Of a DNA stretch of 64,000 nt, positions 1,476 through 57,759 are shown one piece after another. A program made the translations under genes and the position numbers. The first letter of the stretch is position 1, and each line of letters opens with the position of its first letter. A model generated the notes under the pieces. It saw only the letters and a list, made by a program, of their open reading frames with translations, made no database searches and was not told the origin of the DNA. The DNA comes from Marsupella aquatica (taxonomy: Eukaryota > Plantae > Marchantiophyta). The stretch covers positions 15,778,330 through 15,842,329 of the forward strand of contig OZ316898.1 of NCBI GenBank assembly GCA_973895155.1. Direction: 5' to 3'.

Positions 1476-3343
1476 CGGGGTATTTACAAAAGACAGGAAC
1501 TAGGAAACAATAACAAGAAACAGTTACTGTTACCAGGAGAATTGGAGGTAAAAACCAAAAACATCGGACCAAAAAAAGGATTCCAAACAATCAAAATTAA
1601 AGCCCATTTGAGTCATTTTCATTAAAACCGTCTCATTCTGGAGGAAATATCCCGTCGGGTAGTTCGACCCAAATTTGCGACGATTACCAGCGCCCAGCGC
1701 TGGTATCAATGAAACAAATGGAAAGGTTGTAGGGTTTCATAGAAGAAGGAAAGAGTCAACAAAAATCCGAGAAGACAATGAGCGGCTGAAAACAAGGCAA
1801 TTCAAATCAACAGAGGCAGGGTCATACAACAACAAAATCCGGATGTCGTTGCTAGCTTAAACCTCAAAATCCCAAAATCCATGTTTAACGCCATCGAAAG
1901 GAAAACCAGACATTGGAGATTGAGCCGATCCAAAATTCATTTACTTCAAAAATGGGCGGAAACATATCACCGAGATTACATGGGCGAAGGAAAGCAATGA
2001 GTATAAGTAGCGCCCGACGCTAGCTTAGGTAACGCTATGGAGAGGAAAATGGGTCTATCCAAAAAGCATTTCCTATCAAAATGGGCGAAAACATATTACC
2101 CAGATTACCAAATCCTAACAAAACATTCAGTACTGAAAAACGGAGATGGAAAGCATGCAGCTTTAGCAGCGCTCGGCACTAGCTTAAATATCGCTGCCTA
2201 GAAACCTAATCGCCGTAGGGTTGCACTCCAAAATAACCTAAGCGCCTGCGATTGGAACACCTTTAGCTCTGTGATTGACAGTCATCATCGACTCCCGCCC
2301 TCGCCCGCTTGTAGTTTTTCTTGAATCCTAAACTCTTGAGCCGAATATAATTGGAAGAGGGAACTCGATGCTCAACATGAGCTTGGCCGGGGCCTGGAAA
2401 ATTTGCATCAAGGAAGTCGACGCGCCCCAATCGCTCTTGCACCCGACGTTCAATTGGTTGCTGACTATCAGCAGGAACGACTTGATGAAACAAGAACCGA
2501 TCGTCAAATTCGCGTGGAGTCTGTCGGTCACCAGTCCATGGAATATTTCTCTCCCCAGGACTAATTTCCTCGTCGTAAGGAAGAGAATTACGGTTCTGGA
2601 AAGTTGATGTCTCGGTCTCAGTGTCGACACAAACTGATTTGAAGGAGCTGAAGTGGCTCTCCACCGGTCAAACTCGGGAAGGACTGAAGAAGGCAAGCAT
2701 CTCGTCCAACGACATTGGTTCCTTCCTCTCCATGTGGTCGCACCAAGCTCGACAACGTCCACATGCAGGTCGAAAACGTCCACACCTTGCCTTAAGGTCC
2801 GCACCCAGCTCGACAATGTTTGCACCTTGCCCCAACGTTCTCACCTTGCCCTAATGTCTACACCTTTATCGACAATGTCCGCACCTTTATCGACCTCGTG
2901 TCTCCAAAAGGTTGACATAGTGACTACCAAAGGATGGTGATCGGTGGACACCCGTAACATCCGAGCTTCAACGGGCAGAGGACCGTTGAGTAAACAGTCA
3001 AATTGCGACACGATTATTTTGAAACAAACTCGACTTAATTACGTAATGACAATATACGGATGGCGACAGAATGCATGAACAATATTATGATGTAAAGGTT
3101 CGAGGAAAAATGTGCACATTTGGGGAGCGCCCGACACTACTAAAGGAAGAGACCAATTTAAACCTTTTATATAAGAAATACATGTATCTCGATAATAGCG
3201 CCCGGTGCTACTGAAGACAACAAGTGGTTTTTAGATTTTTATTATGAGCATATGAAATGAAATACATGTCTTTTCATAACAGCACCCGGCGCTAGTAAAA
3301 GCTGGAAAAGAAAATTACATCAATTATAGGTTTTTGATTGAGA

Positions 3344-6300
3344 TTATGATCCAGAGCTCTGTGATCTGTCGGTAGAGACTGCTTCATCATCGACATACTT
3401 GCTCATAGAAACGTCATCTACATACGGGTTTCTAACAAACTTTCTGTCAACTCCTCTACGAAGGCGGAGACTTTTGTTTTCCCAGCAAAGAGTCCTTTGA
3501 CTATCCTCCTTTCTCGCAACATTCTCAGCGTAAGACGGAAAAACAAATGGTTTCTCCGGTGTATCCATTTCAAAACGTGCAACTTTTCTTCTGAGTTGGA
3601 AGCGCTTTCTGGTATTCCATTCAGACCTGGGTAGATAACCAAGTAAGACAACCGATTGAAACATACAATCAATAGCACAAAATGCATGAAGGAGCTGGAA
3701 AAGAGAAAGAAGCTTACGAGTTTCAGAACATTACTCGGAAGAGTCATCGCTATCACTCTCGCCAGCAGATTGCTCCTTACCCCCCCCCATGAGTTGTCCC
3801 CCCGTCCACTTCATCTGCTGTCCCCCCACTTGACTCATATCGGAGTCAAAATTAAGTACAGACCGGAGCTTGTCCCTCTTTTTCTTTTCCGGTGGTTGAA
3901 TTGGGGGAGGCAAGGTTTCTACTTCCTTAGAAGAGAGTAGATTTAAGAACACCTTGGAACCAGTTTCAACGAAATCCTTCCGATTCTCCAGTCCAATTAC
4001 AAACCTCCCAGAATAGTCTCCGGCTACAAAAGAGCTACCCAAACCAACTGTCCAATCTATGAAAATGTCCCGAGGCCGAGTGATGAGCTCTATCACAGAC
4101 TGCATGAATCCAACCGACAAACGGGCATTCCCTACGAATTCCATCTCAGGTGTTGGATCTATATTGAGAGTGGGAAGCCCAATTAAATTAGTGATGGAGG
4201 GATCTTCTATAACAGACAGAGGTCTAAACCTCGAGTCCTTGGGTACTTTCCCTTTTTGAGATACTCGGCAAAAGACGTCTAGCCTGAGCGTGAATATCTG
4301 CGAGATAAACCAAGAATGATATGTCATTCCATGCATTCATACACATTCTTGAGTGTAAAAAACAGAGATCATGACTTGGAATTTACCTGTCGGTCAGTCT
4401 TCGGCGCGTACATAGGAACTGACATAACAACATTGTGTGTGGAGATGCAATGAAACTTCTTCGATTCCTGACATGCGGATATAACCTGAGACATAGGATC
4501 GTACTCCCCATTATGCAAAATTGCTAGCATTCCATCATCTGATAAAAATGGGTCCATTCCACAAAAGAATGATGTTGCCAGTGTGTGGTCGGGGGTATTC
4601 CATTTCGGGACTTTTCTATCTAGCAGCGATGGTTTCAGACCCGTAGGAAGGTAAATGAATCCTGCATGTACTCCAAACGATCTTTCCTTCCCTCCACGGA
4701 CAATTCCCTTGTCTCGATATCCCAACTTCATGAGGTCCTTTGCCCATTTCTCTACACCATTTACCCAGTCAGGCTTCTCCTCTTTGTTGAACGTTGTGTC
4801 ATAGAATTCTGAGATGCTAGACTCAACCATGCAATGCCTTGAAAGAGTGTTTTTGAAGTCACCAACTTCTCGTTGAACACCCGTTGCAGCCGCACTTTCC
4901 CGAGCGGAGGATGATCCACCTTCAATTGCCCTTTTTCGCTTCTTTCTAGTACTGACCGCATCTACTGGAGCAATTGACTTCCCTTTCTCGACGGGTGTAA
5001 GTGGATCAGATGGAGGCCCTGTATTGGCTTCAGATGCCTCTAGGGTGGCATCTATCTTTGTATCGCCATTGCCGATGGCGTCTGACTTTCTCCCTGCTCA
5101 AATGGAAGGTGATGTTAGATTTTGAGCGCATGGAAAATGCAAAGTATACTAACGCCCGACGCTGGCCAAACTTTCTCCAAGAGATGGAAGCAAATATATA
5201 TATTTGTGGAACAAATGGGACAAATGCAATCTAACATATATTGAATGGCATAGCAGCGCCAGGCGCTAACCAAAGAACTACAAATTATACTTACGTTTTT
5301 TCCCGGACATTGTTGATTCACTTGGGACAGCAGTATCAGATTTCCCTTTCGCGCGAGGCTTTCGGCTTCGGTTAACGTGAACAACTGTGGTCTCACAGTT
5401 CATTTGCAATTCTATTGTGGACTTATCTACATCATTCGCTAGTCCCTGCTTCATGTCAGAAACAATATTGACTGGTATCTGGGACTTAGAGAGCTTGTGG
5501 AAAGCATCCTTTTCTCGGTGATCAAAGGGCGAGTCCCATCTGTCTGTATCTAGGTACCATGGACAGTGGGTTCTCTCCCATTCACTTAAAGGTCTCGTTG
5601 GGAAAATTCCCTCCGCGGGGTACATAGAGTACAAATCAGATAAATTGTCACCTTCTGATATTACTGTCCACTTCTGAAAAGCGGCGGGATATGCCTAGAA
5701 GTAATCAGGTCTAGTTACTTCCATGTGGATGTAAAATCGGTAGAGGTACCTTTTTGCTCGCTTCTGGTTCTTCAAAGAGTAGTCCTCTTTGTCCGGATAC
5801 TTCGAAGGCCACATTGTATTAAAAAACTTACCCTTCATCGAGTCTCCGTATCTCTTGAAATCATTAGTAACTATATCAATGAGAGCTTCAAAAGATTCAC
5901 ATGCCCAGGCTTGCAAGCGATTCTCGAGAATGATTTGTTGGACCTCTCTCAAAGCACACTATAACATCCCCACTGCAATCCCCTCTACATTGTTCCACGT
6001 AATCCAGGTATGACACCACTATTTTACTGGATCATCATTGACGCTGTTCGGATGGAAGAATTGCCTTTGGAGCTCAGGATTGCAATGGGCGACAAGCAAA
6101 GTACTCCTGAGCTTGGGGTCGAGTGCGGAAACAGCAGTAAAAAGCCTGGCTCGGTCCATCGTACACAAGACGGTATCAGGTTTCTTCTCTCGCTTATTTC
6201 TCTCCGTCATAGGATACATTTCAGCACACGTAGATAGAAAGTCCTCAAATTTTGGACTTAACAAAGGAGTGATTTTTGATGTTTTCACTGCCCACTCCTT

Positions 6301-7589
6301 GGTGGCCTCCTTCATCATTACGACATGTCTTGTGGAAACCTCCTCGGCCGACCAAGGGGTACCTAGGGCCGCAGCAGACTCCATGTCAAGCTTGAACTGG
6401 TTAGAATATGATTTAATCTTATTCTCACATAGAATATAGACAAGAGCCTCTTGAGGCATCTTTTTTGTGTACCGGGATCCTTTCCGCGTCTTCAACCTGA
6501 TCTGCTCAAACTTCTTATAATTCGCAAGGTCGATGAGCTTACTATAGTACTCCAGGTCGTGAATCAAAATCCTCTTGATTCGATCTGCGTCAAGGATCCA
6601 TGACGGTTCAACCACGGCTTGTCCAAGCCTGAAGGAAAAGAAAGCAATTAGAAAAACATTTAAGCAGCGTCGGGCGCTCATAAAACAATTCCTCTCCAAG
6701 ATATGCTATAAAGAAGAACTTACTGGTTCACGGTGTGCATCGCTGCTTCAATTTCAATCAGGGAACCCTTGTCCCCATTGAAGACAGTACAGAGCACTCG
6801 CGGGTGGTATTTCAGGTTTTCTGGATTCTCCTTATTGACAAGCGTGCAGGAGTACAACCGATGGTTCCCGTATAAAACTGAGAACATCTTATCCTTTAGA
6901 ACGAGAAAATTGGTGTCTACCGCACATTCTTCCTCAAACTTTTCATTTTTGGATATCCATATTGGATCCCAAGTATCACGAATTTCCTTTGTGCAAGTGA
7001 GCGTCACACCCTCAGCGTCCGCCGGCTGAACATAAAACCTCATTCCTATCGACAAATTGTATCCCATACTACGAAAAGAGTCTTTCAACTTGTCAATGGA
7101 GGAGCTATCTTTCTGCAAAGTGTGGATGACCTCCATGTGCACCAACCGATACAGCGGAATCCTAGGAGGCTCTTTGTTAAACCCTCAAAAATCCTTCCCA
7201 AAGAACATGACATGTTTTGAAATAAGGTCGGTCTCCGAGAACGAGACATCTTCGATAGCAAATGTGTCAACATTCTCCATCTTTTTTCGCGTCAGCTTCG
7301 AAAACGAATTACTTGAGACGGGAACAAGCGATGCGCTTGACCTCGTCACTCGACGTGTATACACCGAACCTGAAAATGAAAACTCAAAAGACTCGCAATA
7401 GCCACGATCACGATCCCCAACAACACTATACCCCCTCGACGAGGAGGGGATTGCATCCATCGTCTCCCGCGACGAGTGTTGTACGAACGGTTGTACACTA
7501 CAATTCTCACGATCGAGTACTGAATCCCCATACCAAATTAACGGTTGATGGAGTATTATACCCGATTGATCAGTGCTATCTCCCTCCAT
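3344..7589 (-). pseudogene. ParB/Srx-like domain + beta-class N4/N6 DNA-methyltransferase-like fusion gene, copy 1 (5 exons, with premature stops)
   Basis: Introns at 6629-6723, 5094-5294, 4298-4386 and 3627-3734 are GT-AG and at the same positions as in copy 2. Motifs: FSVLYGNHRLY (ParB GxxR-like), GFIYLPTGL...FLSDDGMLAIL (motifs IV/VI-like), IELITRPRDIFIDWTVGLGSSFVA...GRFVIGLEN (motifs X/I/II-like). The start codon is uncertain. Confidence 0.8.
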
Positions 7590-8520
7590 GTAATCTATTT
7601 AAGAGACGTTACAATGAAATTGGGTATTACTTATCGTTAAAACAAAGCGACAATCTAAGAACTGTGACAAATATTAATGCAGAATCCGCTAAACTGTTTT
7701 CGTGACGATCACGCTAACCGTAGTTACCGTTAAATATTACCGTTGACCAAACTACTAAAACTTGGTAATGCATTGCTAGCGTCGGGCGCTAGTAAAATTT
7801 TACCCACATTGGTCATAAAGTTTAATGTGTTCAATAGATAGCGCCCGACGCTACCCATTCCGTGGTCTATTCAAGGTTATGTTTTTGGTCCCAGTTTATG
7901 TGAATTTTTTTGAAAATGAAGAACTTTAGGACGTAGGAAGTTTAATTTTGTTCACATTTGGTCCTTAAATATGGTGTACCAATACTAGCGCCCGGCGCTA
8001 GTACATATATCCCTGAATAGTGCTTAAATTTGTACGATATTGCATTTTTAGATACAAAAAGTAGACTTATTGGTGTCCACTGTAATGCTAGCGCCCGACG
8101 CTAGTCTGGTGTGTGCCTGAATTAAAACCTTATAAATCCTGGAATTTTTGGTAGCGCCAGGCGTTGCTGAAATCATGTGATTTATCTTGGCCTATATGTG
8201 TTCATTTTGACACAATAAATATCCCTGACACCCGCACTTACTGGGGAAAAAAGGACAAACTCTACATTTATGATTTCAACGGACACAATTCTATGTCGTA
8301 TTGAAATGACTTTTATAACGGTCAGTCGTGTTCACGCATTAGTATAAGCATTCCATTTGGGGGGAATTTGCTTTGTTGATTCCTTCATTTTCTCCACAAT
8401 GTCTCGCTTAAATTGTAATTACACGTGCTTGTACTGGAGACGTCGTCAAGATCCCCGTGCAAGTTTCTGATGCTTACAAGCAAGTTAGTGAAATCTACCT
8501 TTGTGGGAGATTTGATTTGA

Positions 8521-11500
8521 GGATGAATGATATTGAGTCCATTCTCCCACAGGAATCGACGAGTGGAGAACTTCAACGGGCTGCGGCATTCGATGTAGAT
8601 GAGGGAGTACGCTTTTGGCATATGCATGTCGGGCTTAGTTACACGCTTAATGTCAGACGTGTCGCTCCAGAACCAGCAGTTGGGAACATTCCTGTTGTTG
8701 TTGTTGACATATCTGACAGTGAAGATGCTGATGTTGCACCCACTCCTCCGTCGCAGTACAAAGTTCCGGATTCCGCTTTTGTTAAGGATGAGCCGGTGGC
8801 TACCTCCGGAGTTGGTCATAAAGTTTACCGGAGGAGTGCGATGGATGCCTTACTCAAGGCCACGGGACATAGTGAACTATCAAGATTTATCTCGGCAGGG
8901 GACTTCCGACATGAGCAAGTTCCTTGTTTGCCAGACAAGTACAATGGAAATGTTGTATTTGAATTGCCTCCCATTGAGGGAACGCTCTCCAAGGGATCTA
9001 GACTTTGTGACATGGACCGTGCCAAAGATTGTTACATTTGGACCCAAATTTTTCCGACAACTGCGAACGTGCATCCAAAGAAACATTGGGAATTTGGTAA
9101 GGTTACGTGTACCAGGTTCATCGAGTGCAGGAACAAGTCCTGTGAGTACTTTCAACGAAAGAAGAGATGCAATGCAAAGGCCTAGCATGGTGCTCCTAAA
9201 CTCAGTGGCCAGCATGTGGTGGGTTCGTTGATTGAAGAGGGTGGTGTAGTCTATCACTATTGTGCGCAGATTCCTTTCTGTGTGAAGTCTTGCCCTGCTC
9301 ACTTGTTTTATATGTACCCTCAAGTCCTTCTTGATACAGAGACCTGTAGTCACATGTCTCGGCTTGCAGTTCATATAGGTGAGCATAACCATCCGAGTAG
9401 GAAAGTTTTCTCGAGGAGCGCTGAGAAGATAGCTGAGGATTTGATAAGAAAAAATCATGAAGCCAATCCTCTAGCAAAGCCGGCTGGTATTTTGAATTCC
9501 GCAACCGGTTTGCTCATGAAAGCTCTTTGCAAAAACGTCGATGACATAGTAGATATTGAAGAAACGGAGATTTGGAAGTCTCTCATGGTATTGTCTACCC
9601 CCCAAAAATTTGCATCGCTTTGTCAAAGCGTTCGAATGGACCAGGCTGGTCGTGGTGAGTTAGATTTCCTAGCTCGGATGCAAAGGTCAAATAACATTTC
9701 TTTCCTCCAAAGGTACCTCCTGCCGGGTCAGGGTTGTGTAGCAGATAGGCCCCATATATATTCAAAATGACAGTCAAGGGTCATGGATCTATTGTAGATC
9801 TTCTCCGGCAGATGCAACCCGGGGGAAGATTGGAAGGAGCTTGGGTGAGTTTTGATGTGATGAAGCGAGTGACAACCGACTGGTTTACTTTCAGTGTACA
9901 CGTTTACGATCACAACTTCCGAGCTCTTTGTACAATCTTCACATACGAACTAAAAGTTGAAGACACAGAGTCCTTTGAGAAAGCGTGGAGAATTATGATT
10001 GAGGTTTGTAAGGAAACTGGGTTACAGGACGTTGTCATTCAAGGTTTTATGGCTGACAATGCTAAGGCTGGATGGATCGCCGTTCGCAATGTCTTTTTTG
10101 GAGGGCACCCAGACCCTGAACGTGAGCGCTCTGATGCATTTCACTTTTACCAGTCTTTCCATCGACACTCTACAGAAGGAGTTTTGGAGGGTAAGCAACC
10201 AGAACATCGGCAACTATGGTAGAAACTTCAGAATGCTCCAACGTTCATTGCAGCGTATCGAGTTTCGAGGGAGATCGTGTTGTGGTGGCAAGTGGGAAAT
10301 TGTGTCCCAGGAAAGCTGATGATGTTGCAGAGTTGGATATCTTGGTGGGTTGTTTGATGGCGTCAGTGGGGGAAGTTCATTTGTGTGGTAAGTTTTCCTG
10401 ATGCGTTTATTAGTCAAACCTCAGTGTGTTTATACTAGCACCAGGCGCTGCTTTGATTTTCGCTCAGAAAACCTTCAAACATTACAGAAAATGAAACTTG
10501 TATCGATAAACCTTCTTTTATTATCTCCTACTCATTGCTAGCGCCTGGCGCTGCTTATACAAAAGAAGTAAATTTGTCTGGACGGGTTTTATTGCAGAGC
10601 AAAAGCGCAGAAGAAGGTGCGCTCATTCCAAACTGTACCGGGTCAGAGTCAAGGCACGCCTCCATGAAAGCATGGGCTACCAAAAAATGGTGGGTCTCTT
10701 TGAAGCATGCAAAGTTGATCAAAATTGAGCTCTGTCACAAGTTGCGGGTTACAACGCATATCGGAAGGGACTCAATAGAGGGAAGGGGCCAACTATCTGG
10801 GAATTAGCCTTCCAATCCGCAGACCAATCTGGTTCACCCAAGTTATTTGAAGAAGCAACCAACATGATTCTTTCCAACGCTGCTGATTTGGATCTGGATA
10901 GGAGCTCTCCTCTGAATGGAGATATTGTCACAAAGTTGGTTAAGAGGAAGGGACTCGCAACTGGGATTGTCTCGCCACAAGACTCCCATCGGCATGACAC
11001 CATTCTCATCACTACACCAAATACTCGAGGGTTAAAACGGAAGAATCTCAACAACACTGCCTTCACTTCCTTTCCCGCAAATATAACAGATCCCATAGTC
11101 GACCTCGGCGGGAGCGACACTTCAACGAATGGAAGTGATTCCCTCGCGAACACCCCTGAAGCCAGAGGAACAAAAACATCATCGCAACCCCCACTCAGTG
11201 CTCCGGCTGTTCTTCAACGTTTGCCGACAGAGTCAACTCCTTTGGAAATGGACGTTCCTAGAGGGACCTAGCATTTGCGGCGGACGGCCAAATATGGGGC
11301 AGGGCCTCAGTGCAATGGGACTTTGCATGGAAATTCTGAGAGGGATGAGTGTCAAAATTGTGTCAAAAAAGTCGGGTTCCATTCGGCAGCAGGTGTTGTC
11401 GGCATTGTTTTCAGTGGACATTGCATTTTCAGAGGCACACCCATTGCAAAAATGATATGGTTCTGCCCAAACAAAACATGCTACAAGAGCCGCCCACGTC

Positions 11501-12118
11501 GTGGTGTTGAACGCCTTCCTCTTGTGCCGGATATCTTGCCAGTTGTGAAAGGGACCAACCTGTCACCTGCCAAGGTAGAGTTCCTTGAAGCACAGGGAGT
11601 CTCGATGGTCCAAATAGCTGCGACGTCTCGCGTTGCACCTGTTCCATTCGACTTGAGAATTAATGTAAACGCATTTCCTGAAAGAATCAATTTTGCCGAC
11701 CCCAACGTACGCCTTTGGACCAGGAATGGGAGAAACTCCAGACCTCGATCAAATCTAACTTTGGCTCACAGTACACGAATGGAGTCGGCTCGGAAAGAAG
11801 CTATGACTCTGGATGGCAAGTGGGATGTGGGTATTGGAATTGCATTTGGGAAGCAATTCAAAATCCGGACCCACGAGAACCTTTGATCCCCAAACACATA
11901 CTTTGTCCAAATTTGCGTCTTCCCAACCTGTTCCTATGAGGATTTCTTCCATCGTCATTCTTGCGGCAAGCCATATATGCCTTGTAAACATTTGTATTGG
12001 GTGTTTATAAATGTCTTCAAGTTTCATGTAGAGGAGTCTACCCTGTGTAGCCAGCCCATTTTCACAGTTGCGGAAGTCAGACTCATGCTGGATAGGCAGA
12101 ACGGGAATGGTTTGTAGA
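8521..12118 (+). pseudogene. Mutator-family transposase with GCM/WRKY-type DNA-binding domain, DDE core and C-terminal SWIM finger (decayed)
   Basis: CPAHLF...HIGEHNHP (WRKY/GCM-like); SFDVMKRV, GFMADNAKAGWIAVRNVF...AFH (MULE core); after a GT-AG intron (10388-10597) NCTGSESRH (third acidic residue); YFVQICVFPTCSY...PCKHLYWVF (SWIM, C>Y mutated). Several stops and frameshifts. Confidence 0.85.
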
Positions 12119-12817
12119 GTAACACGACATTCTAGAGACTGTCATTTTTGTAACGGATACTATGGTTTTTGTCTGTAGTCAACGGATATTACACTTGTTT
12201 TTTCTTGCTTTTGGTTAGCGCCTGGCGTTGGTTCTAAAACATTAATATTGTTAAATTTTGAATTTTATCTGGTTATTGTCATGTTGTTGTCCCTTAACTT
12301 AAACTTTTGTCCCTGTTAAAGCTTTGTTAGCGCCTGGCGCTAGTTTTCACTCTGTCCGGATCCAATATTGAAAATGCCAGAACCATTCTTTGCCGATCGG
12401 TTGTTTAAGCCTATAACTGGATTTAGGGTGGGTCCCACCATAAATTACTCCATCCCTGCATGGATTTTATTTTTCCTTCTCATAGGCCAAACTGCGCTTT
12501 TTGAACTGGACTGTTCTGAAATGATGTTGTATCTAAATAGCAGGGATATTCAATGACGACATTATTCATGTAGAACAGATGGACACTCGGTTTGGAATCT
12601 CTCTTTGCAGCTGTGACCACACCCTTGGCTTATATCTGACCGCCTCACATTTGGCACTAACAAACATTCAACTTGATGATGTGGTGGAAAATGACGTTAA
12701 TTTTTGGGGAACTTAGCCAAAAAGTACACTTTTACCATAAGACTTTCCCGTTACCAGTTAAGAGTTACCTGATAACAGGAATTCTGTTACCTGTTTCCTG
12801 TCACCGCTGTTATACCC

Positions 12818-43829: not shown

Positions 43830-43924
43830 TCCAAACACTGTTCACTGGTAACAGCTCCTTTTAACTGGTACCAGAATCTGTTTCTTGTTACTGTTATCTG
43901 TTTGCTGTTGTTTGTAAATTCCCC
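43830..43924 (-). repeat. Orphan MULE-family terminus
   Basis: Reverse complement GGGGAATTTACAAACAACAGCAAACAGATAACAGTAACAAG..., homologous to 1477 and 34031. Confidence 0.75.
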
Positions 43925-46900: not shown

Positions 46901-49410
46901 CCAATTTTTGCTAGCGCCCGAAGCTACTAATTCCTTTTCATTGCATCCAGGCTTGGACAAGCAGTCGTCGAGCCTTCCTGGATTCTTGACGCGAACAGAA
47001 TTTCCCAAATTTTGTCGCGTGATCTTGATCACTATAAGCCACTCATTGACAGCGCGAACATGGCAAAGTTTGAGGCAATCCAAAAGAAGACGAGAAAGGG
47101 GTCTTGGTTTACACATAAAATGCCACAGGATGCTCTCATCTACATTCTGTGTGTGGACAAAATCAAGTCTTACTCAAATCAATTTAAGTCTGATATGGCT
47201 TTAGCCAAAGCTCAAGGGGCTTCTTGGTCAGAAGAGGAGACCACAAAGAGGCATGAGGCAATGATGAAGGAGGCGACCAAAGATTGGTCGATCAAAGTGA
47301 CGAAGATCACCCCTTTACTTCATCCGGATTTTGGAGATTATTTGGGAACCTGTGCTGAGATGTATCCCGTAACTGAGAAGAACAAACGGGAGAAGAAGCC
47401 AGACATAGTTGTATGCACAATGGATCGAGCCAGGTTGTTTACTGCTGTTTCATACCTGGATCCAAAATTGAGGTGCACCCTTCTAGTAGCCCACTGCACT
47501 CTCAAGATTCGGAAATAGTTTTTCCATCCTGCAAGTGTCAACGACAAGCCTGTGAAGCAGTGGTGCCATACATGGCATACTTGGAATTCTGTGGAGGGAA
47601 TTGCAACTGGAATGCTTCACACTTCCTTCAAACAGATTTCTGACCGGATGTCGGCTGACCGTCTCACAAAGTCTAGGTGTGAGTCAATGGAGGCCATGCT
47701 TAAGATCATTCTCGATGAATTCAGAAACTTTGGGGATCTTGTCAAGGCAAAATTCTTCAACAACTTGTGGCCTTCCAAATATGCGGACAAGGAAGATTAC
47801 ATAGAGCGGAACCGGAAGAGAGCCAAACGATATCTATACCGGTTTTACATGTGGATGGAGCTTAGATCTCTTGACACTCTATGGGCATACCCGGCTGCAT
47901 TTCAGAAATGGGTGTCTATCGAAGAGGGAGACGCTCTTGCCGACCTTTATTCGATGTACCCAGCGGAGGGAAAGTTTCCACCACGTTCATTGTCGGAGTG
48001 GGAGAGACTTCACTGTCCGTGGTACCTCGACACAGACAAATGGGATTTACCGTTCGACAAAGCTGAGAAGGATGCCTTCATGAAGTTGCAAAAGTCCCAG
48101 ATCCCTGCCAACTATGTGTCTGCAATGAAGCAAGGTCTCCAGTCTGATGTTGACGAATCTGCATCTGAGTTACAGAAGAATTGTGAGTCTCTTGTCATGC
48201 ACATTGACCGAAGCCGTAAGCCAAGAGCAAAGGCAAAGAATGAGTCAGCTGCACCAAGTGACTCCACAAGGTCCTTCAAGAAAAGTGAGTAGTCTAAGCG
48301 CTTTTTGGTTACTTGTTGGCGTTGCTTATGCAGGAGTTTCATTTGGAAATTCCTTTGATTAATAGCACCTGGCGCTAGTCTGAAAGGTTGGACTCATTCA
48401 AGTTTTTGTGCCTAACAGGAGGTCGAAAGTCTGACACGGAGGTCCCGGCTGCCAAAGGGAAGAATGATGCAACTCCTCAGGCATCGGAGGCAAACACTGG
48501 AGCTCAAGAAACCCCGGATCAAGGGACCCCGGATGGTGCTGGAAAATCCATTGTCCCTGTTGACGCAACTAGCACGAAGAAAAAGAAAAAGAGAGGCGCC
48601 GGTGAGGACAGAGCAGCATCATCTACTCGAGACATTATTTCCTGTGGACTCCAGAGAGATGTCGGGAATTTTAAGCGAAGGTGTTCTAGACACTATTTTG
48701 TGGAGTCCAATTTAAACTAATTTTACGATTCGGTATTTAACAAGGGGATGAAGCCCATGTGGGTTACTAAAGTTGAGGCCTGGGGAAAGGAATTGGTAAA
48801 GTCAGGAGACAGAGAGAAGGGAGTAATGCGTGGCGGAAAAGAGAGGGGCTTTGGTGTGGATGTTGGTTTCATCTACATTCCCACTGGATTAAAACCAACA
48901 CTTCTTGATCGGAAGGTTCCCAAGTGGAACCTTCAGGATTACACTATTCCCAACTCTTTCTTCCGAGCCATGGAGCTGTTCCTTGCAGACGATGGCCTAC
49001 TTGCAATTTTACACAGAGGAGACTATGATCAGGTATCTGAAGTGATTGCGGCTTGCCAGGATTCTAAGTGTTTCTAGTGTATTTCAACCCACCATGTGGT
49101 CATGACTACACCAATGTATAGGCCCCGATCTGATACTCAGGTAACAATTCCTCTTGCACATACTAGCGCCCAACGCTACTATCAGCATTCGCAATATCTA
49201 CAATTCACTTATCTTTCGTAAGGATGAATGGTTGACTAGCGCCAAGCGCTAATATATGTGTCTATTTTCTTATACTGCCTTCATTGGGAAACTGTGTTGC
49301 AGATATTCACACTTACTCTTAATATATTTTGCCGCATTTTGACAAAGGGGAAGGGTCCCGAAAGACCCCAAGTTCCGGCCACTATCGAATGCAGAAGACC
49401 CTTTCGTCAC

Positions 49411-49597
49411 TGTTATGAATACACAAGATGATAGTAGTCAATAATCCCCACTCACTTCCATTATGCCAAGGACTTATATAGTCCAGAAGGGTTAACATGG
49501 TTGGGTTAATGTTAACCTATCCTATACTATATAAGTCCTTGGCATAATGGAAGTGAGTGGGGATTATTGACTACTATCATCTTGTGTATTCATAACA
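49411..49597. repeat. Aberrant fold-back 5' LTR (72-bp perfect arms, 43-nt loop)
   Basis: 49411-49529 is the reverse complement of 55125-55243; 49526-49597 is a direct copy of 55172-55243. Confidence 0.95.
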
Positions 49598-49612
49598 CGT
49601 TATCAGCGCGAC
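49598..49612 (+). promoter_or_regulatory. Primer-binding site complementary to the anticodon arm of tRNA-Ile (half-tRNA priming)
   Basis: CGTTATCAGCGCGAC pairs with recalled plant tRNA-Ile GTCGTGCT(I)ATAACG with one G-U pair. It lacks the TGG of canonical PBSs. Confidence 0.7.
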
Positions 49613-50143
49613 TTGCTCAATTACATTTTTTTTACATGTGCTCCCTCCCCAAAATCTGACAACTCAATAGATCGAGGTCCACACAAAGAAAACAACACAA
49701 TGTTGTGTGTTTTTTGCTCTAATGGCGAGAATAACCGCCTAACTACCTCCCAAGAATAGAGAAAACAAGCTTATGATCGAAGAACAAAGAACTGGCCATA
49801 GAGCGTCGAGCCTAATCACGAGCGAAGATTCTCAACCTTGAACGAAGGAGACAACGCGACGAGACGCGAAAAACAAAATAAAAGACATTGGCGAAAAGTG
49901 AAAACTTTGAGGACCGCACACAAGGACATACGAACGAACTCCATCGGGGACAATTTGGATGCGATTCAAGGGGCAGATGAGTCCCGTGCCTTGAGCGAAA
50001 GGATCGCAATCGTTTCTCTTTCTTTTGGTTAACTTGATCCATCACAACAGCCGATCGATCGGGCGGGACAAGGCAAAAGTCATAGGCATTTGATACAAAG
50101 GAACACCATATATTTATAAGGCCCAAAATCAGGCGAAATAGAC

Positions 50144-53100
50144 ATGGCGACATTGGAGAAGTTACATTTCCCAGCCCTACTAGTAGACGGCAGCAACTAC
50201 TTGACATGGGCCGTAGATGCGGAAACATACTTCGCATCGTTGGAGCTTGAAGATACATTAATCACAGACCAAAATCTGACTCTACAACAGAAGGCCAAGG
50301 CCGTGTTCCTTTTGCGCCAGCACTTGGTTCCCTCACTAAAATCCCAATACATGAACGAAGTCAATCCACGACTCCTGTGGGACAAGTTAAAGGCCCGATT
50401 CGACCATATGCGCGAAATATGGCTTCCTGAGGCTCGCCGCGATTGGTACAACCTACGAGTGATGGATCATACTTCCATTGCTAACTACAACAGCGCTCTA
50501 TTTAAAATTACCTCTCAACTAGAACTCTACGGCCATCCAGTCCCAGACGCAGATAAGATCGACAAGACACTGAGTACATTCCCCGAATCAAACATTGCAC
50601 TCGGTACACAGTACCGAAATATGCAATTCACCACATATTCAGATCTTATCGCACATTTACTTGTAGAAGAGAAGCAACAGGTGGTCGCCATGCAAAACGC
50701 CCGAAAAAGACCTGCGGGAACAGAACCACCACCACACAAACCAGAGATAAATTACTATCAGCGAGATAACATGGGACGAGGCCGACCAAGAGGCAGAGGC
50801 GGATACCAAGGCAGAGGTAGAAACCAATCCTACAGAGGTCGAGGATATCGACAATCATACAACACAAGAGGCAGGGGAGTAGGCGGTAGAGACAGGATGA
50901 GTGATAATGCATCGGACAACACCAAAGATGACAGGATGTGCTACCGATGCGGAAAAATAGGACACCTGAAGAAAAATTGTTGGGCATCGGACCAAACAGC
51001 CAGGAAACATACAGAATCAAGAGCTAGACTCAAACAAAACCCAGCAGGGAACTACATGGAGCTAGAAGAAGCAATAGCCACCTACAAAGACCCCGAACAA
51101 CCTCATGAAGTGGAGACCCACATAGTAACTCCAGCAAGAGGACCCTACACACTACAAGACCCCAATCTAGGCATAATTGACAGCAGTACGTCTCATACAA
51201 TACTAAAGGACAAGAAATATTTCCACTCAATTACCCCATCAGCCCGGCATATGACCACCATTTCAGGCACAAACCAGATTGAGGAGGGTAAAGGCACAGC
51301 CACGGTAATATTCCCAGGAGGCACTGCACTCGCCATCGAAGCAGCGATATTCGCCCCGCGAGCTACAAGGAACCTCATCAGCTTCCGAGACATAGTCGCA
51401 AATAAATATCAACTGCGCACAGTGAAAACAGACGAAGAAGATACCCTCCAAATCGTGGAGGTTACCGAACAAGGTATACATATTAAAGAAACCTTACCCC
51501 TTATACCACCAGGCCTCTACGCAACTCAAATTCAAGCTCACTATGTCACTGCAGACTTACCTGATATCACATACTTATGGCACTGTCGACTGGGACACCC
51601 CGGAGTAAATATGTACCGCAAAATTATTCATGACTCCCGTGGAATCCCCCAAGGAGTCAACCCATCAACAAAACAAAGGCAATGCCTGGCGTGCTCTCAG
51701 GGGAAGCTGATTACACGCCCACAAATACAGAAGACAATCTATGCCATCCCGAACTTCCTGGAACACCTGAACGCAGATGTATGCGGCCCGATCCACCCAC
51801 CAAGTGGACCGTTTAAGTATTTCCTGGCCATCATCGACTCTTCGACCAAATGGCTGCAAGTATCTCTACTCTCTACACGCAACTTGGTCTTCGCTAGGAT
51901 ACTGGCCAACATTCTAAAGCTTAAAGCACAATTCCCAGAACATCCAATTCGGAAACTGAGAGTGGATGGTGCAGGGGAATTCACCTCAAAAGCATTCGAT
52001 GAGTTTTGCTGGGCAGCGGGCATTGACACTGAATACTCAGTCCCATATGTCCATTTCCAAAATGGAATGGCAGAATCCGTTATCAAGCGTATACAGATGA
52101 TAACCAGACCCCTGTTAATGAATTCAAAGTTACCCCTATCCACATGGGGACACGCAGTCCTCCATGCTGCCACACTGCTTCAATACAGACCATCGGCGTT
52201 CAACACAAAGACTCCACACCACTTAGCGTTCGGACTACCTCCAGACCTGTCACACCTGCGGGTATTTGGATGCAAAGTCATGGTCCCAATACTGGGACCC
52301 AAGCGTACAAAAATCGGACCTCAAAGACAAGAAGGAATCTACATCGGAAATGACTCATCCTCGATCATTCGCTACCTGGAACCGACAACAGCCGATGTGT
52401 TTAAGGCCAGACATACAGATTGTCATTTTTACGAAGACACTTTTCCCACCCTAAGCATAGACAAACAAATGACAGGGGACTTGCACCCACACCAGATCAA
52501 CTGGAACAGCAGAAACTTACTCAACCAGGACCCGAGGACGAAACAAACGGATGCAGAAGTTAGACGATTACTCCACCTCCACGAGATGCTGGATAAGATC
52601 CCAGATGCATTTAATGATGCAGCAAATGTTACAAAATCCCACAACGAGGCAACCAATGTACCAGCCAGAGTACAAATGAATACTCCTCCAGCAACAGTAG
52701 CTGCCCCTAAGGCGAAAAGAGGTAGGCCACCAGGATCACATGATACCCAACCCCGCCAAAGACGCCCCAATCAGGTAATTCCTGAAACTACTTTTCACTT
52801 CATTAATAATGAATCCGAGACACCAGACATATCGGGTAATGAGGAGATGTCAATTCAGTATAAGCATACAGGACAAATTTACACGAGACAAAACACTACT
52901 GTCGACGAACAATTTGCTTACCATATAGCTCAAGAAATAACCAATGATACTTCGGACCCTTTAACAATCAAAGAAGCACAAACAAGGTCAGATTGGCCAC
53001 ACTGGAAAGAGGCCATTGACACAGAAATGGATGCACTAATCCGTCGACAAGTCTTCGGACCAGTCAAACAAGTTGATCCTAACAATGACTATACAGACAG

Positions 53101-54757
53101 CCGATTTACGTTCATTAAAAAGCGAAATGCAAAAGGTGATGTTATCAGATACAGAGCGCGGTTAGTAGCAAAAGGATACACCCAGATCCCAGGCAGGGAC
53201 TATGATCTAATATATTCACCAGTAATGGACGTGACGACATTCAGGTATTTAATTGCTTTCTCTCGCAAACACCAGTTATGCAATATCCTTATGGACGTAG
53301 TAACGGCATACCTATATGGAGTCTTAGACTCCGAAATTCATATGAAAGCACCAAAGGAATTACTCGAAAGAGTGGCAGAACACATTCAGGGGAAGCAATA
53401 CCCGAACCTGAGCAAGGATATGAAGTCGGGAATTGACCAGATTATCCCTAATGATGATTGTAAAGGCCTTGTGTTGAGCAGTGGCAACACACAGAAAGCA
53501 CCACTCCAGTACCCCGGAAAACGAAGGACTGGACAGCAGGCATTTGCTGTGCAAGTATTGAAATCCATAAACGGCCTGAAACAAAGCGGCCGTATATGGT
53601 ACCAGAAATTTAAAACCGAAATACAAGCACTCGGATTTATTACAGAAGACATAGCGCCCTGTATATTCATCAAAAGAGTAGACACAGAGTTCGTCGTGTT
53701 AGCGCTATATGTCGATGACATTAATCTCTTCGGTACACAACGACTATTACGACAAACAATCAACACAATGAAGGGCATTTTCGAGATGAAAGAACTGGGA
53801 GAACCGACTTACTGCCTCGGCCTTCAGTTCGATCACCTACAGACAGGCACATTCATTAGCCAGTCTACCTATACAAACAAAATCCTCCAACAATTCAATA
53901 TGCAAAAGGCATACCCGGTATCAACACCAATGGAGCTGAGATCCTTAGACACTGCGAAGGACATGTTCAGGCAAAGACAGGACAACGAACCAATACTAGA
54001 TTCAGATAAGCCATACTTATCGGCTATCGGAGCCCTCCTTTACCTGGCCAACAACACCCGACCGGATATATCCTTTGCAGTGAGCCTCCTCGCACGACAT
54101 AGCGCGCACCCGACAATACGCCACTGGAACGGCATAAAACGAGTATTCCGATACCTCCAAGGAACAATTGACATGGGACTATTCTTCCCCAACGAAAGCG
54201 AGGATGAACTTACAGGATACGCGGACGCTGGATACCTCTCAGACCCCCAAGATTCAAAGTCGCAGACAGGATACGTCTTCTTGCAGGGTAAAACCGCCAT
54301 ATCTTGGAGAAGCACGAAGCAGAGCCTAACCACAACGTCATCGAATCACGCCGAAGTAATTGCCCTCTATGAGGCATGCCGCGAAGCGATTTGGCTCCGT
54401 AGTATAATCACACATATACTCAAACAGACAGGAAAAACCTTACTCACAAATCCAACCACCATCTACGAGGACAATAGGGCATGCGTCGACCAGATAGTTA
54501 CAGGCTACATGAAGACCGATCGAACCAAGCACATAGACCCGAAATTTTTCTTTACGCACGAACACAGCGGAAAGCAAATACAAGTAAAGTGGATAAGCTC
54601 ACAAGACAATTGCGCCGACCTCTTCACCAAGCCGCTACCAGCGACTACACATCGAAAGCACGTCAGCGCCATTGGAATGCATCGTCTCTCCTCCCTAACC
54701 TCCTCGACTAACGACAACTCCCGACACGAACACACAGCCAACGCAAAATCGAAGTAG
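50144..54757 (+). CDS. Copia Gag-Pol polyprotein (1537 aa)
   Basis: Zinc knuckle CYRCGKIGHLKKNC; protease IIDSSTSHT; integrase WHCRLGH..CLAC with D-D-E (ADVCGP, VDGAGEF, NGMAES); RT YRARLVAKGY, GLKQSGRIWY, YVDD; RNase H GYADAGY..SSNHAE..YEDN..ADLFTK. Confidence 0.97.
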   Translation: MATLEKLHFPALLVDGSNYLTWAVDAETYFASLELEDTLITDQNLTLQQKAKAVFLLRQHLVPSLKSQYMNEVNPRLLWDKLKARFDHMREIWLPEARRDWYNLRVMDHTSIANYNSALFKITSQLELYGHPVPDADKIDKTLSTFPESNIALGTQYRNMQFTTYSDLIAHLLVEEKQQVVAMQNARKRPAGTEPPPHKPEINYYQRDNMGRGRPRGRGGYQGRGRNQSYRGRGYRQSYNTRGRGVGGRDRMSDNASDNTKDDRMCYRCGKIGHLKKNCWASDQTARKHTESRARLKQNPAGNYMELEEAIATYKDPEQPHEVETHIVTPARGPYTLQDPNLGIIDSSTSHTILKDKKYFHSITPSARHMTTISGTNQIEEGKGTATVIFPGGTALAIEAAIFAPRATRNLISFRDIVANKYQLRTVKTDEEDTLQIVEVTEQGIHIKETLPLIPPGLYATQIQAHYVTADLPDITYLWHCRLGHPGVNMYRKIIHDSRGIPQGVNPSTKQRQCLACSQGKLITRPQIQKTIYAIPNFLEHLNADVCGPIHPPSGPFKYFLAIIDSSTKWLQVSLLSTRNLVFARILANILKLKAQFPEHPIRKLRVDGAGEFTSKAFDEFCWAAGIDTEYSVPYVHFQNGMAESVIKRIQMITRPLLMNSKLPLSTWGHAVLHAATLLQYRPSAFNTKTPHHLAFGLPPDLSHLRVFGCKVMVPILGPKRTKIGPQRQEGIYIGNDSSSIIRYLEPTTADVFKARHTDCHFYEDTFPTLSIDKQMTGDLHPHQINWNSRNLLNQDPRTKQTDAEVRRLLHLHEMLDKIPDAFNDAANVTKSHNEATNVPARVQMNTPPATVAAPKAKRGRPPGSHDTQPRQRRPNQVIPETTFHFINNESETPDISGNEEMSIQYKHTGQIYTRQNTTVDEQFAYHIAQEITNDTSDPLTIKEAQTRSDWPHWKEAIDTEMDALIRRQVFGPVKQVDPNNDYTDSRFTFIKKRNAKGDVIRYRARLVAKGYTQIPGRDYDLIYSPVMDVTTFRYLIAFSRKHQLCNILMDVVTAYLYGVLDSEIHMKAPKELLERVAEHIQGKQYPNLSKDMKSGIDQIIPNDDCKGLVLSSGNTQKAPLQYPGKRRTGQQAFAVQVLKSINGLKQSGRIWYQKFKTEIQALGFITEDIAPCIFIKRVDTEFVVLALYVDDINLFGTQRLLRQTINTMKGIFEMKELGEPTYCLGLQFDHLQTGTFISQSTYTNKILQQFNMQKAYPVSTPMELRSLDTAKDMFRQRQDNEPILDSDKPYLSAIGALLYLANNTRPDISFAVSLLARHSAHPTIRHWNGIKRVFRYLQGTIDMGLFFPNESEDELTGYADAGYLSDPQDSKSQTGYVFLQGKTAISWRSTKQSLTTTSSNHAEVIALYEACREAIWLRSIITHILKQTGKTLLTNPTTIYEDNRACVDQIVTGYMKTDRTKHIDPKFFFTHEHSGKQIQVKWISSQDNCADLFTKPLPATTHRKHVSAIGMHRLSSLTSSTNDNSRHEHTANAKSK

Positions 54758-55096
54758 AACCTCGACAAACTACTAAATCGTAGTATCTAACGAACAGTTT
54801 ACAGAGAGACACATGTTCCCCCGTCATGAATACAATACTACCCCGACTAGAGTAACAAATAAACGCTTACTTACTCTTAGCCCACTGGCTTAGACAGTAA
54901 TAGGTTACTTTTAGACTTAGAGCATACACATTAGAGACTTTCTGAATTAGGGACCACAAATTGTAATGATGGTAGTACTCTTCCTTGAGAGGAAAGCAGC
55001 AAGGTTTGATGAGGCTACATCATAAGTGACTCCCACTTTTAAACTAGGGTTAAATGTGTGGTTCCTTGACACCCCGTCCAAGTAACCAAGGGGAAG

Positions 55097-55243
55097 TGTT
55101 ATAACCCATAATATGACTTAACCCTAGTATAGGATAGGTTAACATTAACCCAACCATGTTAACCCTTCTGGACTATATAAGTCCTTGGCATAATGGAAGT
55201 GAGTGGGGATTATTGACTACTATCATCTTGTGTATTCATAACA
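55097..55243 (+). repeat. Normal 147-bp 3' LTR with TATATAA box
   Basis: TGTTATAACC...TTCATAACA immediately after the PPT. Confidence 0.95.
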
Positions 55244-57759
55244 GTCACTAACATTATTGGGTTTTTGTTGCCGCGACATGACCCGACTCCTGAGCTCCAA
55301 TTTGCAGGAAATTCACGATTGCCTGTGGGTTTCATGCAAACTATTTTGGAATTGGTGACTCTTCCTAGAGATATCATTATGGACTGGACAGTAGGTTCCG
55401 GTAGTACGTTTGTGGCTGGAGATTATTCTGGTCACTTTGTTGTTGGGCTGGAAAATCGGCTAGAGTTTGTTGACACTTCCGATAAGGTCTTCCTCGATCT
55501 TTTACAGAACAAAGAAGTGGTTGCACCAACTCCTCCTAAGAAGATTCCTGGAAGTAAGAAGCAGGACAGGCTCCGTGCTATTCTAAATTTTGATTCGGAA
55601 GACGAGGATGAGGGTGGCTATGCTTCTCAGCAATCTAAAGATGATGAGGTGTCGAAGAATGTGGTGGACCTTGGATCTGGAGATGAGGACAGTGAAGAGT
55701 CAGAAGAGTAATTTTCTTTAGCTTTCTTTCTCTCATTGTATACTTTTTTCCAAAGAACTCCTCTACTCCCTTTTCTCTAGAAAATTTGCCCGATTTCCCA
55801 ACTTCGACGAAAGAACTCCACTTCAAATTCTCAGGTCAGAGTGGAATCTTCGGAGGCATTTTCAACTTTGAAGGAACGTCTCTAGGAACGTTGTACAGAC
55901 CCCGGAGAAGCCATTTGTTCTCCCCTCTTATGCTGAAAAGGCGGCACGACGGGCAGATTCAGTCAGGACGCTTACTTGGGAGAGTAAGGGTCTTAGACTC
56001 AGGAGAGGCTCAGATAGAAAGTTTGTGCAGAATCACTTTGTAGATGATATTGCAAAATCCAAGTATGTGGACGACAAAGCAGAGTCCACTGATAGATGAG
56101 AAAGTAGCGGTTTAGAATCAGGCTCAGAGTCGAGTGGTAGTTGTGGATCTGGTCTTTAGTTTTCCTTGTTTTATTTACCCGTTTATGGAGAATGACGACA
56201 CTCAATAAGAACGCCGTGACGTGTCGGATTAGAGTAGCGCCCGACGCTATTACTGTAGCCGGTAGTTCAAAGAGGTTTTTATTTGGTTGTTTTCCTTATA
56301 GCGCCCGGCGCTAGTATAAATGTACTCAATGGCCGCTTCACGTCCAATATATGTGACAATATTTTCATACCCTTCGGTGTCTTTTTTTGGGTGCACATTT
56401 GCTGGTATGAGTTTTGTTGTTTGTTGTTTGTTGTTTACTGTTTGCTGTTTGCTGTTTGCTGTCACGGAGAGATCCCCCTTATTGAATGAGGTGTGATTGT
56501 ATCAGACTATGAATGGCGAGGTTATTCTCCCCTCATAAGGTGGAATATCATGTTTGTAGTGGGGTGGTCTTTGTATGATTGCCCAAACCCTAAACCCTAG
56601 TTGGAAATGAAAAGTAGAACTCAAGACCGTTAGTAATTTTTGCCAACCAAACTGCTCGGCCATTTTTGGCTAGCGAGGCAAGTTATTACTAGCAAAGGGC
56701 CCATTTTGCCAAAAACAAACCTTCTTACAGCAAATAAAATCCTGTTACGAGCATTTTTTTCCTATTTCCTCGCATGGTAGTCATACCCTTTGCTGAGCAC
56801 TTTATCTCATAGTCTAGTTTCAGACTTTAGCATTACTTTTTACTTTTACACTTAGGTTAGGAATTGAAGAGGCATACCTCTTCAACTTTTGTTTAGAGGA
56901 AATTTGTCCCTAAGTATAAGAGGGAAAGTTTCCACCATTTTACTCAGACTTGCATTTCACTTTTGAAAGTCTCCTTCTTTGAAAAGAAGTAATAGATTCA
57001 CATTTATCTTTGGTAATCTATGACTTGTGTTTGGAATTTAGTGCGTGACCACACTTGCTAGAAACTGTTTGATGTGACTAGCAATGCCATACCAATATTC
57101 AGATTGATTGGAAGCGCATGCTTGAGTTCATGCAAAGATCTGAATTGACTTGAGTGTTTGAAATACTTATCAAGTATTTTTGGAAGATGCACCAGACGAG
57201 AACTCACAATTACCATAGATCCAGAAGAGCAATCTGGAGAGTGATTAAAAGAGGAAGCTTGTTCGGAGTGATGAGTACCGCCTTGCTTTGACTTGGCCAT
57301 AAAGTTAATACGGGCTTACTTCCATATATTTTTTACAAATTCTTAGATGGTTGGCTTTAAAGATTAGCTTTAGGCATCAGCCTAATTTAGTCAGACTCTC
57401 TGTTGACTCTTAATCGTGCCTAACTTAGTCATAGATTACTAAGTGGCGAGAGGAGATGAGACATTTAAGGCTCGCCTAATTCTATCTTTACGCCTCCGGC
57501 TTTTGGTTGTTTTCTTATATTTTTAGAATTTATTATTGCACTGTTGATGATACAAACATCACAATACCTAAGGATGTATTAAAAACTCCTTCCACTAGAC
57601 CTAAGCATGTCGGTAAAGGCTTAAAATATGAGATGGGTTAGCTTAACTATCTCAAAGTATGTTAATACAATCTTTTAGGTCTCACGAACTCTTAACGGGA
57701 ACAAATTCTGGTTGTTTAAGAGGAAAGTAGTTCATCTTTCCCTAAACCCTACTCTACAC

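Follow-up and report, generated by a model that had tools for sequence, protein, structure and literature searches.

Evidence for selection on a long, family-specific palindrome in the non-coding DNA of a liverwort transposon lineage, a candidate self-recognition site

The window analyzed here is a 64-kb stretch (64,000 nucleotides of contig OZ316898.1) from the liverwort Marsupella aquatica, which houses three copies of one terminal-inverted-repeat (TIR) transposon family. These are element 1, with a transposase gene and a divergently transcribed accessory or "cargo" gene; element 2, which retains the cargo gene; and a miniature inverted-repeat transposable element (MITE). Their non-coding DNA is strewn with the palindrome TAGCGCC-N-GGCGCTA, and the evidence supports the conclusion that this dyad is a selected, family-specific cis element. 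Related elements in other genomes carry arrays of their own, different palindromes. The explanation we favor, at a probability of about one half, is that one transposon lineage uses the dyad to recognize itself, through a dimeric protein of its own, likeliest the cargo protein, which would counter silencing in the manner of the VANC proteins of Arabidopsis VANDAL elements.

Six copies of the dyad in the window are exact. Allowing up to two mismatches yields 27 matches against 0.06 expected from dinucleotide-preserving shuffles, and up to three mismatches yields 35 against 0.82, the largest count in any shuffle being 3. The three copies of the family account for 33 of these 35 (18 in element 1, two in the MITE and 13 in element 2), with the outermost at 1688 and 56313; the copy numbers and outer coordinates given in a preliminary description of this DNA are thereby reproduced exactly. 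The two matches outside the family, at 15863 and 18652, have three mismatches each, represent one sequence duplicated in a long terminal repeat (LTR) pair and are at chance level, so that the other elements of the window indeed lack full copies, as had been noted. No second palindrome family emerged when the window was scanned de novo for repeated dyads. The position matrix extends the symmetry past the 15-bp core to about 25 bp, with the form W-W-T-R-n-TAGCGCC-n-GGCGCTA-n-Y-A-W-W. The copies show 45 departures from the consensus, of which C>T and G>A, the class already reported to predominate, make up 31 and T/C or A/G alternations at the two outermost positions another 12. Within the core, the two GCGC CpGs show 0-3 changes per position and the central CC-N-GG 4-8; the numbers are small, and plain CpG deamination would predict the reverse, with more decay at the GCGC CpGs.

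The sites are sharply partitioned with respect to coding sequence. No site lies inside any exon block conserved between elements 1 and 2 or with the liverwort relatives described below, even though the share of conserved coding sequence is ~54% in element 1 and ~52% in element 2; on a binomial estimate, the chance of such complete avoidance is ~7e-7 for the 18 sites of element 1 and ~7e-5 for the 13 of element 2. The claimed confinement to the non-coding DNA of one family is hence borne out by both the family enrichment and the exon exclusion. The sites also occupy the interior of the element in a manner unlike ordinary subterminal transposase sites, as had been proposed: most lie in introns and in the central intergenic DNA (Table 1), while the first 150 bp of every family end in the window contain no palindrome, the nearest being at least 150 bp inside. 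What recurs at all six family ends instead are 7-mers of the ACAGGAAAC/GTAACAG type. Because the ends carry this repeat and not the palindrome, there is a separate candidate transposase site at the termini.

The argument for selection comes from the comparison of elements 1 and 2. Their cargo genes have diverged to 65% protein identity, with a non-synonymous divergence (dN) of 0.27 and a proportion of synonymous differences (pS) of 0.87, i.e., saturated. Outside the exons, blastn finds nothing alignable between the two elements save 60 bp of terminus, bearing out the impression that the surrounding non-coding DNA is unalignable. The elements nevertheless have 13 and 12 sites, respectively, at up to two mismatches. 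When two pairs of orthologous introns, both of which start with GTAAGT, are aligned, the dyad stands out as a conserved island amid diverged sequence. As the same dyad survives saturated synonymous divergence, the motif was maintained while both lineages were active, and neutral persistence over this divergence is not credible. The proposal of a selected cis site therefore holds, including at the orthologous sites in the two introns.

To place the family in a wider context, relatives were collected through cargo homologues, a transposase search and a profile of the ParB-like exon of the cargo gene. A HMMER search with one cargo exon against 1.84 billion representative proteins gave 57 matches, traceable only to liverwort assemblies, metagenome assemblies and assemblies of public read runs; the cargo protein is thus rare, and it is conserved, with dN/dS well below 1. 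In a search of sequencing runs, four holders turned up, from two studies and with no RNA entry among them. Eleven loci (L001-L011) were gathered through the homologue, transposase and profile searches; besides metagenomes, the named sources are Riccia sorocarpa (GCA_046195345.1; PMC11923412) and Calypogeia fissa (GCA_965154635.1). A blind dyad scan revealed a private array in 10 of the 11 loci, with seven palindrome types beyond that of the window (Table 1), so subfamilies do carry different motifs. The distant match L008 was rejected as an array, having just three copies of an unrelated dyad within a tandem repeat. A cross-table of motifs by loci, covering the window and L001-L007, is block-diagonal save for one R1-type match in L002.

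These palindromes are variations on a common theme: every half-site of every motif type contains a CpG. The window shares ATTGY-TAGCG with the L005/L007 family of Calypogeia, from which it differs at the two inner bases, and the two Riccia families differ from each other at those same two inner positions (GA versus AG). Riccia sorocarpa hosts two families with different palindromes (L001/L003 versus L002), and so does Calypogeia fissa (L005/L007 versus L009); the 23-bp palindrome of L009 is closer to that of L002 in Riccia than to that of the other Calypogeia family. In a tree of the central domain of the cargo protein, the motif-sharing pairs (elements 1 and 2, L005 and L007, L001 and L003) cluster together. 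The distance between L002 and L001 in this tree is about that between elements 1 and 2, yet the motif of L002 has switched. Placement, on the other hand, is kept as the sequence changes. In L001, L002, L003, L005 and L007 it is again the region between the divergent transposase and the cargo gene that has the largest array, and the intron following the ParB-like exon holds a palindrome in the window copies as well as in L004, L005, L006 and L007, with a differing palindrome sequence. Tandem units of ~95-105 bp bear sites in L001, L005 and L007.

An asymmetry is apparent in the intergenic arrays of the two Riccia loci L001 (8545-9212, with further cases at 12369, 1545 and 1695) and L003 (8203-8604). 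One half of these sites is the family's own GGCGGA, and in L001 the other half is the GGCGAG of the sister family. Such hybrid sites could be intermediates of a specificity switch or targets of a mixed dimer.

The cargo protein combines three regions. The Pfam scans, which covered more than 30 open reading frame (ORF) pieces and seven longer homologues, with the cargo exons searched singly, returned only a weak N6_N4_Mtase match on the cargo protein, the domains of a copia element and DUF659 on a neighboring ORF of L004, outside its palindrome-bearing stretch. We also considered L004 as a hAT-borne cargo gene and rejected this, since the last palindrome comes before the DUF659 ORF, which probably belongs to an adjacent gene. 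The C-terminal N6_N4_Mtase match (PF01555) covers the motif-I end only and is below the curated cut-off, with E-values of 1.1e-5, 0.012 and 0.066 in three lineages (in the window at 3731-4336 in element 1, E 0.012, and at 55265-55711 in element 2, E 1.1e-5). The S-adenosylmethionine (SAM)-loop motif is kept, and the position of the catalytic (D/N/S)PP(Y/F) tetrad reads GFIxLPTxL in five lineages. Conversion of a methylase into a DNA reader would be expected to leave just this, a kept SAM-loop end with a replaced tetrad. The N-terminal exon has the conserved signature V-x-D-G-N-H-R-L-x-S-W ... K-Y-H-P-R-V; a language-model feature search (Atlas) placed it with DUF3723, ParB_N and DUF6551 at 0.90-0.94, which we treat as a lead only. 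Between the two lies a helical domain, for which the AlphaFold2 (AF2) model has a predicted local distance difference test score (pLDDT) of 82 and a predicted template modeling score (pTM) of 0.78. Fold searches with this model gave no significant match, the best being a Foldseek E of 0.7 and a VIA Z of 5.7 over 72 residues.

The transposase matched nothing in Pfam and no sequence in the PDB. With the intact transposase ORF of L005 from Calypogeia, the Atlas feature search pointed to Mutator-like element (MULE) families, with a top score of 0.93 and agreement among the ten best; on this lead the transposase is putatively Mutator-like. The element 1 transposase is homologous to those adjoining the cargo gene in Riccia and Calypogeia.

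These observations can be accommodated by the following mechanism. An element-encoded protein, proposed to be the cargo protein with its N-terminal ParB/Srx-like module, novel all-helical domain and C-terminal amino-methyltransferase-like domain, would bind the ~25-bp dyad as a dimer that reads its two half-sites. Once occupied, the CpG-containing dyads would identify copies as the element's own, even gene-less derivatives; through the dyads of the divergent promoter region, introns and subterminal DNA, such copies would stay transcribed and free of methylation. The effect would be anti-silencing or self-activation, after the example of VANC, and new specificities would arise through base changes in the inner half-site and spread by tandem duplication. 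Binding by the cargo protein, its dimeric mode and the effect on silencing are inferred, whereas the motif with its enrichment and non-coding placement, its survival of saturated divergence, the private yet related palindromes of all sister families but one and the different terminal repeat are observed. A wider scenario is more tentative, and as a whole somewhat doubtful. Here, land-plant transposons would have built self-recognition from a catalytically disabled, bacterial-type DNA-methylase-like protein and long CpG-centered palindromes, re-tuned family by family through two inner half-site bases, as an anti-silencing or self-marking module unrelated to VANC, with the Riccia hybrids as a switch in progress.

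Since two families in one host differ in palindrome, a host factor is unlikely and the reader is most likely encoded by the element; among the element's products the cargo protein is favored because the ends carry their own repeat, the sites lie far from the ends, and the cargo protein is conserved and has a methylase-like C-terminus. Several points nevertheless weigh against this choice. Wherever a locus is long enough for a verdict, cargo and transposase are found together, and co-variation with the motifs hence cannot separate the two as reader; a search for transposase-bearing relatives without cargo turned up a sole long contig (L007), which has cargo and palindromes, the others being contigs of 2-3 kb. 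No ParB-type helix-turn-helix was found in the modeled central domain, the fold of which matches no known DNA-binding domain, and the full-length model of P0050 is confident in the central domain only, not in the ParB-like or methylase-like parts. The ParB label is without profile support: Pfam and PDB profile searches with the exon were blank, and a profile search of 5.8 billion proteins retrieved the same family only, without Pfam labels. The link to parS and ParB drawn in the preliminary description is for this reason unsupported, and it gains nothing from the domain that follows, the model of which matches no ParB DNA-binding domain. Finally, as both window copies of the cargo gene are dead, the window is silent on present activity. 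An alternative is that the palindromes are the transposase's own internal sites, serving recruitment, the transposition complex or activation of family transcription. The transposase does adjoin the arrays in element 1, L001, L002, L003, L005 and L007; the MITE, necessarily mobilized in trans, retains two sites; and repeated subterminal sites are a feature of both Ac and En/Spm. We consider this reading unlikely in view of the different repeat in the palindrome-free ends and the depth of the sites in cargo introns and the central intergenic region, and also since a ~25-bp dyad is a poor fit to the monomeric zinc-finger N-terminal domain that Mutator transposases usually have. A Mutator transposase can itself be a sequence-specific activator: that of AtMu1 binds and activates its cognate copies, with binding observed at the TIRs (10.64898/2026.08.24.746577).

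A reader supplied by the host, whether acting on a promoter or enhancer element (e.g., an E2F-like reader of GC boxes) or as a silencing factor that the element cannot avoid, would account for the densest clusters lying in the divergent promoter region and for the CpG in all motif types, several of which are GC-rich. We regard it as very unlikely, given the different palindromes of same-host families in both Riccia sorocarpa and Calypogeia fissa, and given that the remainder of each locus lacks the palindrome, as does, apart from the two chance-level matches, the 45 kb of other DNA in the window. Least probable is that the dyads have no protein reader and are neutral, either by-products of tandem amplification or structure-forming DNA or RNA (cruciforms, hairpins or small-RNA sources). 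Some sites do sit in tandem repeats, with 64-bp units at 43948-44091 and the longer units of L001, L005 and L007, but most window sites have unrelated flanks. Such by-products would not be expected to survive saturated divergence or to undergo concerted replacement by a different palindrome in sister families, and a stem with a loop of 0-1 nt would probably be unable to form a normal RNA hairpin.

Should self-recognition by the cargo protein prove correct, its interest would be considerable. In very few systems, VANC foremost, have experiments shown how a transposon discriminates itself from the genome and escapes silencing without harm to its host. There would now be a second protein, unrelated to VANC, with unusually long, clean and easily mutated targets—a naturally diversified, programmable reader of 23-25 bp dyads that could be useful as a tool. 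With the comparative series of eight related palindromes from at least three liverwort genomes, experiments could address directly both the code of specificity and what CpG methylation contributes, and Marchantia offers a tractable liverwort host.

Table 1. Coordinates of the transposon family, its genes and palindromes in the window, and palindrome types of related loci
Feature	Position	Strand	Description
Element 1	1477-12817		Two-gene copy, cargo gene on minus and transposase on plus strand, divergent; from sequence reads, TIR match, tblastx to element 2 and liverwort loci
Element 1 target duplication	1468-1475 and 12818-12825		Perfect 8 bp, ACAACCAC
Element 1 left terminal region	1477-1540	+	Short ACAGGAAAC/GTAACAG-type repeats, without palindrome
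Element 1 palindromes (1688, 2008, 2167, 3125, 3196, 3280)	1688-3294		Left end to cargo gene 3' end
Element 1 cargo (accessory) gene	3365-7433	-	Conservation with element 2
Element 1 cargo exon	7433-7341	-	
Element 1 cargo exon	7289-6714	-	ParB/Srx-like (lead)
Element 1 cargo exon	6642-5296	-	Helical domain
Element 1 cargo exon	5007-4930	-	
Element 1 cargo exons	4881-4384 and 4288-3821	-	Methylase-like
Element 1 cargo exon	3628-3365	-	
Element 1 palindromes (5150, 5254)	5150-5268		Next cargo intron; element 2 counterpart 48363-48377
Element 1 palindrome	6665-6679		71-bp intron between ParB-like and helical-domain exons; element 2 orthologue 46912-46926
Element 1 palindromes (7777, 7839, 7986, 8089, 8152)	7777-8166		Divergent cargo/transposase intergenic region; densest cluster of element 1
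Element 1 transposase gene	about 8820-12096	+	Fragmented; tblastx 35-55% identity to L001, L002, L003, L005
Element 1 palindromes (10436, 10539)	10436-10553		Gap (10411-10589) between conserved transposase blocks
Element 1 palindromes (two)	12216-12342		Downstream of transposase, ~480-600 bp inside right end
MITE	34031-34387		357-bp non-autonomous derivative with family ends
MITE target duplication	34023-34030 and 34388-34395		8 bp, GTGAGATG
MITE palindromes (two, degenerate)	34185-34199 and 34207-34221		
Element 2	43925-56478		Opposite orientation to element 1; right end at 56478
Element 2 palindromes (three)	43948-44091		64-65 bp spacing, inside tandem repeat
Element 2 palindromes (four)	45307-45723		Upstream of cargo gene; corresponds to element 1 intergenic cluster
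Element 2 cargo exons	46099-46191, 46258-46833, 46937-48283, 48517-48594, 48646-49143	+	
Element 2 cargo exons, continued	49313-49411 plus 55241-55618, 55833-56096	+	
Element 2 cargo intron palindromes (46912, 48363, 49164, 49237)	46912-49251		
Nested copia retrotransposon	49403-55251	+	Pfam RVT_2, rve and gag on 50144-54757; interrupts methylase-like exon of element 2
Element 2 palindromes (two)	56235-56313		Cargo 3' end to right end
Palindrome of L005, L007			ATTGY-TAGCGAG/CTCGCTA-RCAAT; 23 and 25 sites at <=2 mismatches
Palindrome of L004			ATTA-CTAACGAY/RTCGTTAG-TAAT; 20 sites at <=2 mismatches in 7.2 kb
Palindrome of L006			AGG-CTAACGG-nn-CCGTTAG-CCT
Palindrome of L010, L011			TTGY-TAACGG-nn-CCGTTA-RCAA
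Palindrome of L001, L003			CC-GGCGGA-s-TCCGCC-GG; 33 and 27 sites at <=2 mismatches
Palindrome of L002			ATTC-CGGCGAG-n-CTCGCCG-GAAT; 10 sites at <=2 mismatches
Palindrome of L009	L009 19-7159		ATCT-CGGAGAG-n-CTCTCCG-AGAT; second Calypogeia fissa family

Elements 1 and 2 share by tblastx one long gene in opposite orientation, comprising seven conserved blocks with short gaps between them. In-frame stops interrupt these cargo blocks, five in element 1 and six in element 2, and both copies are accordingly dead. The right terminal region of element 1 (~12750-12817) is an imperfect inverted counterpart of the left one, and the gap at 10411-10589 in its transposase gene, which houses two palindromes, is presumably an intron. 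The insertions of element 1 and the MITE are flanked by perfect 8-bp duplications, which become 9 bp if a mismatch at one shared end position is allowed; for a MULE the expectation would be 9-11 bp.

Element 2 is less orderly, with neither a transposase nor a proper left end. Directly to its left, at 43740-43924, is a terminal fragment of the family whose best match is to the left ends of element 1 and the MITE; this fragment shares its polarity with the right end of element 2 at 56478, the two "...CCCC" ends being in direct and not inverted order. Element 2 is hence improperly bounded on the left and lacks a matching target duplication, and its left side may be the product of aberrant transposition or of truncation against a second copy. 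A 279-aa ORF (44170-45009) lies in the region 43925-45840, where the transposase would be expected; no homologue of this region was found, either in element 1 and elsewhere in the window or among the eleven loci. The copia element nested in the cargo gene contains no palindrome and is outside the TIR family; it has an intact polyprotein ORF of 1537 aa, and its 5' side bears a perfect 72-nt fold-back (49411-49482 versus 49526-49597).

Elsewhere in the window, 29438-32105 and 39660-42236 form an inverted duplication, probably a further element with long TIRs, whose ~2.7-kb arms are 80-87% complementary and contain several ORFs of 240-350 aa without Pfam matches. A direct repeat of 300 nt, with 100% identity between its copies, occurs at 15447-15746 and 18236-18535; its 2789-bp spacing is the same as that of the out-of-family dyad matches. 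A tandem array of ~10 units of 26 bp is present at 14137-14396.

Among known systems, bacterial ParB-parS resembles the present one in having a palindromic site in multiple copies and a protein whose N-terminus possibly belongs to the same ParB/Srx superfamily. It differs in that ParB has a CTP-binding motif, the GERR box, where the cargo protein has V-x-D-G-N-H-R-L, and the latter shows neither a profile-level ParB match nor a ParB-type helix-turn-helix. The sites here are 23-25 bp long and spread over ~10 kb, against sites of ~16 bp clustered at one locus with ParA; we noticed no ParA-like ORF in these elements, which hold two genes. The subterminal repeats of Ac/Ds and En/Spm, bound by the transposase or TnpA, likewise comprise many family-specific copies of a short motif, some as inverted pairs; these are situated within a few hundred bp of the ends, in contrast to the intronic and central intergenic sites of the liverwort elements, whose ends carry another repeat.

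A closer parallel is found in the accessory genes of algal transposons. The Sola1-1 element of Ectocarpus has a ParB-like/DNA-methylase accessory gene, with green and red algae also referred to (PMC12477816), and in red-algal Plavaka (PAG2/PAG3) inverted-repeat arrays adjoin a ParB-like accessory gene, for which self-binding has been proposed (10.1101/2025.02.11.637652). Both works are sources for the proposal that accessory proteins of this kind bind the element that encodes them; Iyer, Abhiman and Aravind 2011 (PMID 21507349) is cited in the same connection. As here, the algal genes are transcribed opposite to the transposase, with inverted-repeat arrays as the proposed targets; they join a ParB-like N-terminus to a bacterial-type amino-methylase, a combination that the cargo protein may share. 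They reside, by contrast, in Sola, EnSpm/Plavaka and Zisupton elements and have been described only briefly, our comparison being one of descriptions. The liverwort version has a land-plant host, a putatively Mutator-like transposase, a methylase-like domain without the tetrad and palindromes in introns as well as in arrays, and its divergence is documented over eight motif types. In full-text literature searches that paired ParB with liverworts and with Mutator-like transposons, no paper dealt with land plants.

The closest resemblance in the behavior of the motif is to VANC, a protein that binds short, family-specific motifs lying in non-coding stretches of the VANDAL family to which it belongs, these targets evolving via tandem repeats (Hosaka et al. 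2017, PMC5735166; Sasaki et al. 2023, PMC10398659). As in the Mutator-like VANDAL elements, an accessory gene lies beside the transposase of these putatively Mutator-like ones—an arrangement conserved in element 1, L001, L002, L003, L005 and L007—and in both systems family-specific motifs that differ between related families occur, often in tandem, in introns and intergenic DNA. The suggestion that the dyad is VANC-target-like thus fits the pattern, and ten further loci agree with it. The likeness is one of motif pattern: the accessory protein has no link to VANC in the Pfam scans, which give the weak N6_N4_Mtase match only, and the sites, found in liverworts, are long perfect dyads of 23-25 bp with CpG cores as opposed to short asymmetric motifs. 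What is new here is the comparative series of palindromes and the evidence for selection.

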